Assembly: GCF_000315625.1 (NCBI RefSeq) | Contig: NW_005434664.1 | Span: 588,167 to 652,166, forward strand | Reading direction: 5' to 3' | Source of the DNA: Guillardia theta CCMP2712 | Taxonomy: Eukaryota; Protista; Cryptophyta | Length of the DNA stretch: 64,000 nt | In this document: one piece after another, positions 12,146 through 14,185 of the stretch | Layout: every line of letters begins with the position of its first letter | Position numbering within the stretch: position 1 is the stretch's first letter | Notes under the pieces: generated by a model | The model's input: only the letters and a program-made list of their open reading frames with translations | The model's database searches: none | What the model was told of the DNA's origin: nothing | Made by a program: the position numbers and the translations under genes

Positions 12146-14185
12146 ATGGAGCTAAGTGCAGTCATTTGGAGTAGATGGTGGGTAAGCTTGAGACAAGATG
12201 ACATGGTAGGAATGAAACAAATACTGAAAGTTTGTTGCATCCGAGAGACTGAGCTTGCTCGCCTCTATCATCTCCTCACTTGCCAGTACAGGCTCGCCCT
12301 CGCTAGCTTGATTCTCTCTCTCGTCTCTACAGGTTGTTTGCAAATCTCAAGCTCCCTTGCTAAGTTCCTGTCAGACACTCGCGCATCGTCTCCACTTACT
12401 GCCAAGGTAGCTTGCCACGGCTTGTGCTGGGCTTGTGCTGGGCTTGTGCTGATTGAAATCATACTAGTGTGCCGACATGACTCCGATCCTCTACGACATG
12501 CCCGTAAGCTCATCGCTCCTCTGCCCGCTGCGCTCATGGACGTTGGTAGGTGTCAAACAATGGAGCGAGGTGCCGGATCATCGTATACAAGAAAGGGCTT
12601 TCTCTTGACAGCGACATCCTCATCAAGCCGCCCTCAGACTTGTGAGTCTCCATGCTGTTGCTCCAGTGCCTGTCTCAGTCGTGGCACAGAGGAGGACTCA
12701 AGTCCGAGCAGTACCTCGCGCTGAATCCCCAGGGAAAGATGCCGCTGCTGGTAAACGATGACATGGCAGCTGGGGGCTGATAGGGTCAGGTAACGGAGCA
12801 CGGCAACATCCCTGAGAGCGACACGATTGCGAGGTAGCGAGGGATCGATAGGGATACAGCTTTGACGGAAGTCGCATAGATACCTCTTGGATCGCTTCTC
12901 TGCAAAGAGCCCTTCCTTCCTGCCTTCTACCCTTGAGGTCCTCACTCACGCCCTCCGCGGTTGATTGACGCCTGGGCTGCTGCAGGCGAGGATGAAGAGC
13001 GATCTCCTGTGTCGCTTGCACGACATGTACATCACGACAATCCAAGTAGGCGCAGAAGTGCCGGAGCGCCTGCTGATGTCGCCCAGGGGTGCATGTACAA
13101 AGCCGAACCTCCCTTCGGAAGATTCTCCAGCCGAGCGGCAGCGCTGGCAGAGCTGAGAGAGCAGGCACGTGGAGGAAGTTGCAGGTGGATGAGTGACCGA
13201 GGAGCAGATTGGGTACCTCCAGGAGCACATAGACGAGGAGGGGCCCTACCTGACGGGCAAGGAGCTGTCTCTTGCCGATGCAACGGTGAGCCCCTTCTCT
13301 TCTCGTCGTCAGAGGCTGAGCCGTTAAAGATCTTTCCAACTGTCATCTTCATCGAGCACATGCTGCCCAAGTTCCTGGACGGAGAGACCTGGTGAGACGA
13401 CCGAGAGGAGGGGAAGAGAGGATGGTTGGATGAAGTTTCGTCAGGGATGCTGAGGTCGTGCTGGGCAAGAAGCTGCTGCGGTGGTACCATTGGATCAAGG
13501 TCGCCAGATCCAAGTCCTGACGGGCTCAACCCGAGTCTGATCCCGGTGCCTTCAGCATTCAGATCAGTCGTTTCAGACGGTCTTGAAGGAGATCAAGGAG
13601 GGCCTTGCAGTGTGGGAAGCGAACGAGAGGTGGAAGAGCATCCTCCATGCAGGCCTGAGGTCTCGCGAGATCCAGCAAGGCAACGCTGAAAGTGTCGACA
13701 GAGATCAAGATGCTCCAACCATCTTCGATCGCATCATTCAACGACAGATCCCTTCGGAGATCGTCATGGAAGATGAAGTCTGCAGCAGCTGCTCCCTGTG
13801 CTCGATGTGATGCTGTCGACATCAGCATGTGTTGGTGTTCAAGGATATCCATCCTCAAGCTCCTGTTCATCTCTTGATTATCCCGAAGAGGAGAGATGGG
13901 CTCACGTACGTTGTGCTCCTTCGTTGACCTGCCGTGACTCATCATCAGACAACTTCGATATGCCACAGCTGATCATCAGGAGCTACTTGGGAAGATGTTC
14001 TTGACAGGTGCCTTCCCGCTTCTCGTGCTTCTCTTGACCCTTGTGAAGCTGCGAGGATCGCGAAGGAGCAAAACCTGCGAGGCTATCGGCTGGTGATCAA
14101 CGACGGCTCTGAAGCTCAACAGAGCGTGTTTCACCTTCACATGCACCTCCTAGCAGGACGCCAGATGCGTTGGCCTCCCGGTTGA
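12146..14185 (+). CDS. Glutathione S-transferase fused to a HINT-type histidine triad nucleotide-binding protein, with probable bipartite targeting leader
   Basis: GST part: [16 protein letters not shown]...[13 protein letters not shown]...[11 protein letters not shown]...[23 protein letters not shown] part: TIFDRII...[17 protein letters not shown]...[34 protein letters not shown]. Start at 12146 or 12212. Confidence 0.88.

Follow-up and report, generated by a model that had tools for sequence, protein, structure and literature searches.

A glutathione S-transferase–HINT fusion gene of Guillardia theta and its homologues in algae with red-type plastids

HINT proteins occur across cellular life, and their physiological substrates are still uncertain. 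In glutathione S-transferases (GSTs) of the Ser type, catalysis depends on a serine, and a Glu-Ser pair binds the gamma-glutamyl part of glutathione. A HIT-type (histidine triad) hydrolase joined to a second enzyme is reportedly found in NitFhit of flies and worms, a "Rosetta stone" protein whose fusion is said to have served to infer a functional link of the two halves. The plant-type adenylylsulfate (APS) reductase, a plastid enzyme, combines an AMP-releasing sulfonucleotide domain with a glutathione-using thioredoxin-fold domain. The subject of the present work is the gene GUITHDRAFT_157151, a nuclear gene of 17 exons on the plus strand of a 64,000-nucleotide stretch of Guillardia theta DNA (hereafter, the window), in which a GST is followed in the same reading frame by a HINT-type HIT domain.

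In a survey of GSTs, the Chlamydomonas protein Cre12.g508850 stood alone in a new class, "Cr1", which was taken as chlorophyte-specific (PMC9937507), and the same gene (GST8) was listed as a candidate photosynthesis gene from a mutant screen, with predicted chloroplast targeting (PMC8448359). The GST half of the fusion shares with Cre12.g508850 43% identity over 245 aa, the motifs V-S-N-N-G-A-R, N-P-Q-G-K-M-P, P-E-S and R-x-H-D-x-Y, and the C-terminal R-W helix, whereas the green-algal protein, 262 aa long, stands alone, lacks a HIT domain and has an N-terminus that resembles a transit peptide. The best solved relative of the GST half by sequence is the phi-class maize GST III (PDB 1aw9), in which the serine of an MPLS motif is aligned with Ser11 of the fusion; both are of the Ser type and have the same placing of the serine and of the glutathione-site motifs, but the match is weak (E-value = 7.6 × 10−11) and the pocket residues differ, being invariant and basic in the fusion. 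The GST half is not a phi-class member.

The HINT half has in common with human HINT1 and HINT2 (3tw2 and 4inc) the fold, almost all catalytic and nucleotide-binding residues, the motif G-R-x-x-x-W-P-P-G and about 50% identity, and their canonical dimer interface recurs in the dimer model of the fusion. The human proteins differ in being stand-alone, about 126–163 aa long and disordered at the N-terminus, whereas in the fusion an ordered linker leads to a GST of 239 aa. NitFhit likewise reportedly carries a nucleotide hydrolase of the HIT superfamily C-terminal to another enzyme in one polypeptide, but it belongs to the Fhit and not the HINT branch, its partner is the nitrilase-like Nit and not a GST, and it occurs in other organisms. 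The likeness to APS reductase is one of functional analogy only, since the catalytic domain is not homologous. Literature searches on the fusion, on the gene and on HIT plus GST in algae found no paper in the searchable library on a GST–HINT architecture, and a Foldseek search of the PDB found no chain covering both domains, in agreement with the original prediction, made from the DNA sequence alone, that no enzyme with this architecture had been characterised. Already known are the gene, present in RefSeq, and the architecture, which is abundant and automatically annotated in public databases; new here is that two familiar enzyme families are joined in a fusion that is conserved but uncharacterised.

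Gene, transcript and domains of the fusion

The DNA of the window is eukaryotic at this position, with very short introns, and three-frame translation of positions 12020-14260 gave GST-like and HIT-like peptides spread over all three frames. The public sequencing runs containing the stretch fell into one group at about 0.9 of the sampled words, probably of genomic source, and a second at about 0.33, which is the expectation for spliced RNA. The RNA evidence was taken from a raw RNA run (X19, 3'-biased) and from Logan contigs of the RNA-like runs X1, X3 and X7, which belong to three studies and have contig depths of 25 to 209; these were placed on positions 11500-14900. In each of X1, X3 and X7, a single contig crosses the whole gene, including both halves, with 13 spliced joints. 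Twelve of the joints are GT..AG and one is GC..AG; the latter marks the only such intron of the gene (13165-13207, 43 nt), whose joint, 13158>13202, has six ambiguous letters, and only the +6 register yields GC..AG together with a preserved frame. One more coding intron, 12504-12549, was placed from contig depth. The resulting splice model contains a single open reading frame (ORF) of 356 codons, from the ATG at 12477 to the TGA at 14183-14185, in 15 coding exons on the plus strand (12477-12503, 12550-12641, 12690-12750, 12790-12833, 12880-12937, 12986-13045, 13087-13164, 13208-13285, 13330-13391, 13445-13499, 13556-13659, 13702-13777, 13826-13905, 13949-14007 and 14049-14185).

The two halves meet at an in-frame intron of 42 nt (13660-13701), which is spliced in X1, X3 and X7 (joint 13657>13700, cut +2) and missing from the transcript protein P0002. 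In the mature protein, the last GST helix is followed by one Arg and then by the first HINT residues. The original prediction had placed the junction within one stop-free frame. The frame 13541-13807 is indeed open, and continuity holds with or without the intron, but the junction is formed by two exons from which the 42 nt are removed. The G. theta MMETSP transcript protein P0002 (260 aa) is identical, letter for letter, to residues 97-356 of the model, junction included. The RefSeq protein XP_005838838.1 (P0016, 345 aa, G. theta CCMP2712), still labelled hypothetical, is the product of the same gene and is short by 11 residues at the start of exon 13556; these residues are contained in the RNA contigs and in the MMETSP transcript, and the RefSeq acceptor of this exon, in the region 13500-13590, is misplaced. 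Two further database entries, P0292 (a GST piece) and P0017 (a HIT piece), are ORFs of one and the same MMETSP transcript, Transcript_27650, and were rejected as separate proteins because P0292 reads into the retained intron 13500-13555. The isoform of G. theta that retains this intron is thus split by ORF callers and could mislead automated domain censuses.

As stand-ins for the 356-aa model in the searches and in folding, P0002, P0016 and the Hanusia phi orthologue P0029 were used. The domain assignments rest on full-length database proteins, not on single exons: exon by exon, the GST matches in Pfam were sub-threshold only (exons of 14-34 codons), and the HIT exons taken singly gave values of 1.2 × 10−5 and 1.2 × 10−9. 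For P0016, the scores against the curated Pfam cut-offs were 48.4 vs. 22 bits for GST_N_3, 29.2 vs. 24.9 bits for GST_C_2 and 88.6 vs. 21.5 bits for HIT (PF01230).

The GST half comprises residues 1 to about 239 (12477-13659, plus strand), as delimited by Pfam on P0016, by 1aw9 and by homology to Cre12.g508850. It is of the Ser type and consists of a thioredoxin-like N domain and a helical C domain, and its target-normalised template modelling (TM) score against a glutathione-bound Leptospira GST was 0.86 (Foldseek). The presumed catalytic residue is Ser11 (codon 12553-12555, plus strand) in the motif P-V-S-N-N-G-A-R; this serine is invariant in 121 family members and was located by the 1aw9 alignment. 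The putative pair binding the gamma-glutamyl part of glutathione is Glu69-Ser70 (codons 12814-12819, plus strand); the equivalent of Glu69 is invariant in the 121 members, and the Glu-Ser pair is invariant in a further alignment (A3). The half retains a glutathione site with the catalytic Ser, the cis-Pro motif and the Glu-Ser pair.

The HINT half, of the HINT1/HINT2 type, comprises residues from about 241 to 356 (13702-14182, plus strand) according to the HINT2 alignment, Foldseek and Pfam HIT. In the alignment with human HINT2 (4inc, E-value = 5.8 × 10−35), the triad, the preceding Gln-Ser, the Asp-Ile ribose contact and the C-terminal WPPG correspond, and the target-normalised TM scores against HINT1/2 were 0.93-0.95 at a root-mean-square deviation of 1.0-1.6 (Foldseek). 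All 29 PDB matches at E-values up to 1 × 10−10 were HINT or HinT-type proteins. The histidine triad HLHMHLL (14132-14152, plus strand; His340, His342 and His344) was identified by direct reading and by the HINT2 alignment, and its three His residues are invariant in the 121 members; His342 corresponds to the nucleophile His112 of human HINT1. The fold, the H-x-H-x-H-x-x motif, and the HINT-specific residues and best matches all place this half in the HINT branch.

The AlphaFold2 model of the Hanusia orthologue, built with the alignment of 121 sequences, had a pLDDT (predicted local distance difference test) of 96, a pTM (predicted TM score) of 0.90 and no low-confidence linker, and it portrays the protein as a rigid two-domain body with a short ordered linker. 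The two-copy homodimer model speaks for binding, with a score of 0.76, the best of three controls reaching 0.00; at least 96% of the contacts agreed between runs, and the partner pLDDT was at least 85. Of 30 proteins solved as same-chain pairs, 21 attained the mark applied to dimers, as did none of 23 solved as single chains; among eukaryotes, 17 of 29 reached it, with only one of the seven that had no older solved relative. The modelled interface is formed by the classical GST patch (residues 51-144) and the classical HINT patch (273-353), so that the predicted symmetric homodimer would use both canonical interfaces together, and one two-fold axis can serve both.

Downstream of the stop codon, plus-strand X19 reads mark a 3' untranslated region (UTR) at 14186-14400, the end being approximate (reads extend to about 14400). 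It contains a 45-nt GT..AG intron (14197-14241), 12 nt past the stop, which is spliced in X3 and X7 (joint 14193>14239) and retained in X1. A convergent gene on the minus strand follows; its introns, 14490-14532 and 14647-14691, appear as CT..AC (joints at 14489 and 14646), and it has a minus-strand poly(A) signature at 14278. Its 3' end overlaps the 3' UTR of the fusion gene by roughly 100 nt or more, and assemblers merge the transcripts of the two genes into one contig.

Fusion family, green-algal relatives and paralogue

Searched exhaustively, the junction frame gave 15 proteins. With the exception of self matches and of P0003, P0009 and P0014, they were fused proteins or fragments matching across the junction; the matches of these three do not span the junction, and P0009 and P0014 consist of repeated HIT-type segments. 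P0002 and the Vitrella member, each used as the query of a word search, gave at least 120 matches apiece, and 120 of the 120 listed carry both GST and HIT Pfam domains. The fused homologues number in the hundreds and belong to algae with red-type plastids; the fusion is not unique to the G. theta genome but widespread in algae. The sources named among the matches listed were the cryptophytes Guillardia, Hanusia and Rhodomonas lens, the haptophyte Diacronema, the dinoflagellate Polarella, the chromerid Vitrella and, within the ochrophytes, diatoms, brown algae, raphidophytes, a eustigmatophyte, a xanthophyte, a pelagophyte and Chrysoparadoxa. Red algae, oomycetes, apicomplexans and land plants were not named among the matches listed, of which only about one-quarter carry names. 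Some members had already been named by the JGI annotation pipeline. In a quick tree, the members grouped largely by lineage, and the fusion has persisted, at about 50% identity, in several distantly related algal lineages. A paper on a Nannochloropsis "HIT1" was considered as a description of this family and rejected, as it concerns a stand-alone peroxisomal HIT protein.

Conservation was assessed in an alignment of 121 full-length members (Hanusia numbering). On the GST side, S11, G14, R16, R18, P56, E67, D105, Y107, Y116 and R128 are invariant, and on the HINT side D269, H277, N326, Q333, H337, H339 and H341. The set R16, R18, D105, Y107, Y116 and R128 is unusual for a GST pocket, and the junction residues E214, R227 and D238 are invariant as well. 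Both active sites are conserved across the family. Neither separate transcripts for the two halves nor a lack of fused homologues combined with a dead domain, either of which would have spoken against the original prediction, was found: one spliced mRNA spans both halves, the fused homologues are numerous and both catalytic centres are intact.

Green-algal relatives were found by searching with the first 180 residues. Stand-alone GSTs of the same subfamily are present in Chlamydomonas (Cre12.g508850), Volvox, Gonium, Astrephomene, Pleodorina, Myrmecia and Pyramimonas; at 45-53% identity to the GST half, they have all its motifs and begin with transit-peptide-like N-termini (e.g., P0287, P0285, P0296, P0261 and P0266). 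The match to P0287 (E-value = 5.9 × 10−43, 49% identity over 180 aa, 47 invariant columns in common) assigns the GST half to the orphan algal class Cr1; this class was defined from one sequence in the published tree, and the assignment here is by sequence match and not by a rebuilt tree. Six further candidates for stand-alone GSTs (P0198, P0199, P0201, P0202, P0209 and P0218) look like truncated gene models, since the sequence of their ends turns into junk where an intron lies, and they were not accepted.

In 70 of 100 homologues that contain the GST core motif, this motif is preceded by more than 15 residues; 52 of these 70 start with Met and have a strongly hydrophobic window, often followed by a small residue and Phe and then by a second Met just ahead of the core. 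The Phe feature occurs in many homologues, e.g., P0034, P0035, P0062 and P0111. Such an arrangement is typical of bipartite plastid presequences, possibly with dual initiation.

G. theta has a second complete GST–HINT paralogue, on the minus strand of contig 17 (G000:C17:662962-666558, about 663600-665400; at about 660-2451 of L001), with far fewer introns and one exon of 166 codons. Hanusia phi also has a paralogue of this type (P0220). In frame upstream of the contig-17 gene stands ...SVDVA-AFVYPAAFQF..., signal-like and then A-A-F; this extension could plausibly be reached by one GT..AG splice, and the paralogue probably carries a plastid-type presequence. A third HIT match in the genome, G000:C19:41083-41492 (plus strand), is 41-47% identical to the HINT half only and is probably a stand-alone HINT gene.

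Mode of action, location and alternative explanations

Taken together, the best explanation, in which we have considerable confidence, is that the gene is expressed as a fusion of a Cr1-class GST with a HINT1/2-type hydrolase, that it belongs to an old conserved family, that the protein, as modelled, is a rigid body forming a homodimer, and that the product of the main mRNA should be cytosolic. Several points weigh against this reading. The contigs of X1, X3 and X7 continue into the convergent neighbour, and a contig across two genes does not by itself amount to one transcript; a single transcript is proved by the unbroken frame, by the splicing of the junction intron and by the MMETSP ORF, which is independent evidence. 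The dimer score may reflect the memory of the model, since GST and HINT dimers of stand-alone relatives have been solved. Logan contigs cannot prove a transcript start, and about three plus-strand X19 reads lie at 11956-12183, with the leader open in frame, which would permit a minor longer isoform. Finally, the proposed coupling of the two sites rests on the fusion, the rigid model and conservation.

In the HINT half, His342 would attack the alpha-phosphate of a compound AMP-X, forming His342-AMP, from which AMP would be released, while in the GST half Ser11 would activate the glutathione thiolate. The GST pocket, whose residues are unusually conserved and rich in Arg and Tyr, suggests a single specific substrate of polar or anionic nature and not a broad role in detoxification. 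Both sites could work on one metabolite stream, e.g., with glutathione used on the leaving group or the precursor of an adenylylated sulfur or acyl compound. Candidate substrates from known HINT chemistry are APS, AMP-thiophosphate, AMP-phosphoramidate and acyl-adenylates, APS being included because of the analogy to plant-type APS reductase. The clearing of adenylates or APS with glutathione, as put forward in the original prediction, would likewise be a proposal. Favoured, though only tentatively, is that the two sites act on one stream, and mere co-translation is about as likely. The halves would in that case be two independent enzymes made together for equal dosage or co-localisation, with no common substrate or channel, a possibility that we regard as real, though not as the favoured one. 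In both halves the canonical active site of the respective family is complete, the GST class stands alone in green algae, and stand-alone HINT genes exist, probably including one in G. theta; set against this are the retention of the fusion across deeply separated algal lineages at about 50% identity, the ordered and conserved linker of a rigid model, and a substrate pocket that is invariant, unlike that of detoxifying GSTs.

The location of the product depends on the 5' end of the mRNA. The leader of the dominant mRNA (12279-12476, plus strand) consists of the exon pieces 12279-12332, 12375-12406 and 12468-12476; the putative leader introns 12333-12374 (42 nt) and 12407-12467 (61 nt) were placed from depth bins and record offsets and are not among the observed joints. 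For X1 and X3, leader lengths of 19+65+38 and 8+65+38 bases agree with the bins and offsets. Contig starts lie at about 12279 (X1) and 12290 (X3), within a range of about 12279-12294, and a branch of the assembly graph was rejected as the cause, as the starts differ between runs. X1, X3 and X7 have zero depth at 11956-12183, and none of their contigs covers 11956-12278. The 95-nt leader is in frame with the coding sequence and has no ATG, so that the first AUG of the RNA-supported message is 12477. This ATG opens the first strand of the GST fold (MTPILYDMP), and the same Met is the start, with MTP(I/V)LYD, of the RefSeq protein and of the orthologue from Hanusia phi (P0029, 87% identical). Because the protein of the dominant mRNA starts at the first GST-fold strand, the main product should lack a presequence and be cytosolic by default.

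The original prediction had read an N-terminal hydrophobic signal from an ATG at 12146, followed by a Ser-rich stretch, and had proposed organelle targeting. That ATG lies upstream of the contig starts and is not contained in the dominant mRNA; the Ser-rich stretch coincides in part (12333-12374) with the first putative leader intron. Organelle targeting is not borne out for the main product of this gene, yet it suits the family, in which many homologues have plastid-type presequences. An in-frame hydrophobic stretch is present in the DNA (12203-12332, plus strand; upstream ATGs at 12203 and 12212, hydrophobic part about 12293-12332). For a bipartite presequence, however, the ORF of the mature mRNA has neither an initiator Met with a hydrophobic signal nor Phe after the signal, the stretch reading ...SLVST-D-TRASS. 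The peptide is probably not noise, because the nearest cryptophyte-type homologue in the tree, P0030, has a similar N-terminus, and it may be a relic or a rare alternative first exon (12203-12229 with a hypothetical intron 12230-12286).

Translation from an upstream start, at 12146 or at 12203/12212 with the 57-nt intron 12230-12286, would supply a signal peptide and imply that the protein works in the plastid or in the periplastid compartment. The leader belongs to a frame that stays open from 12059 as far as the coding sequence, the hypothetical splice from 12229 to 12287 would encode a textbook-type signal, the signal-like N-terminus of P0030 is similar in sequence and has the same C-A-x-M just ahead of the core, and both the 52 homologues with signal-like extensions and the few upstream X19 reads agree with such a start. 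It nevertheless seems unlikely, given the zero coverage at 11956-12183 in three runs of such depth, contig starts that differ slightly, as at a transcript start and not at an assembly branch, the presence in X1 of 8 nt of the hypothetical intron, the leader without ATG, the start of the RefSeq and Hanusia proteins at MTP(I/V)LYD and the missing Phe. The existence of a functional long isoform is similarly doubtful, and the short, cytosolic product is preferred here.

Some further observations concern the region around the 5' end. Three tandem copies of an 11-nt unit (ggcttgtgctg) lie at 12419-12451, within the second putative leader intron. Run X3 has a 168-nt contig at 11741-11869, which indicates low-level transcription upstream of the gene, and the upstream transcription at 11741-12183 represents either a short RNA with its end near 12190 or a long 5' isoform that is rare. 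At 11568 the contig of X7 departs from the window sequence, and what follows is reverse-complementary to about 10330; the continuation encodes AEFYYYHN, as does the minus-strand ORF 10284-10511 (region about 10320-10350), and this strand-switch joint probably arose in assembly or reflects an inverted repeat within the adjacent gene for a TPR (tetratricopeptide repeat) protein.

It was also considered that the GST half might be a non-catalytic module for dimerisation or docking, by which HINT would be tethered to a partner, for instance an enzyme that forms adenylates. Assembly modules are known in the GST-like domains of eEF1B-gamma and of aminoacyl-tRNA synthetase complexes, HINT hydrolyses aminoacyl-adenylates made by LysRS, and the dimer model does use the GST interface. 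Non-catalytic GST-like domains, however, usually lose their glutathione-site residues, whereas Ser11, the Pro of the K-M-P motif, the Glu-Ser pair and the pocket residues are invariant in the 121 sequences, so that a purely structural role of the GST is very unlikely. The notion of an artefact, i.e., two adjacent genes or a misassembly joined only by contig assembly, draws on the entry of the Logan contigs into the convergent downstream gene and is effectively refuted already by the mere 42-nt spliced intron between the halves with its continuous frame, by the independent MMETSP ORF across the junction and by the hundreds of fused homologues elsewhere.

Within the preferred reading of an expressed, conserved fusion, a more specific proposal may be made, which is rather improbable as it stands: the fusion would perform a previously undescribed glutathione-dependent step on an adenylylated compound, a step that would have begun in the plastid, for example in the turnover of APS, AMP-thiophosphate or an acyl-adenylate. 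If this were true, the Cr1 GST that is alone in green algae and the one fused to HINT in algae with red-type complex plastids would serve the same step, HINT would gain a defined partner reaction, and the two G. theta paralogues would be its cytosolic and plastid versions.

A fusion kept for so long in several major algal groups is itself a "Rosetta stone" that ties HINT to glutathione chemistry. The orphan class Cr1, published as an oddity of Chlamydomonas, gains a context: it is widespread, standing alone in several green algae, where a member is predicted to be chloroplast-targeted and is a candidate photosynthesis gene, and nearly always fused to HINT across algae with red-type plastids. 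As diatoms, brown algae, haptophytes and dinoflagellates carry the fusion, its function is of relevance to sulfur, redox or nucleotide housekeeping in phytoplankton of ecological dominance.

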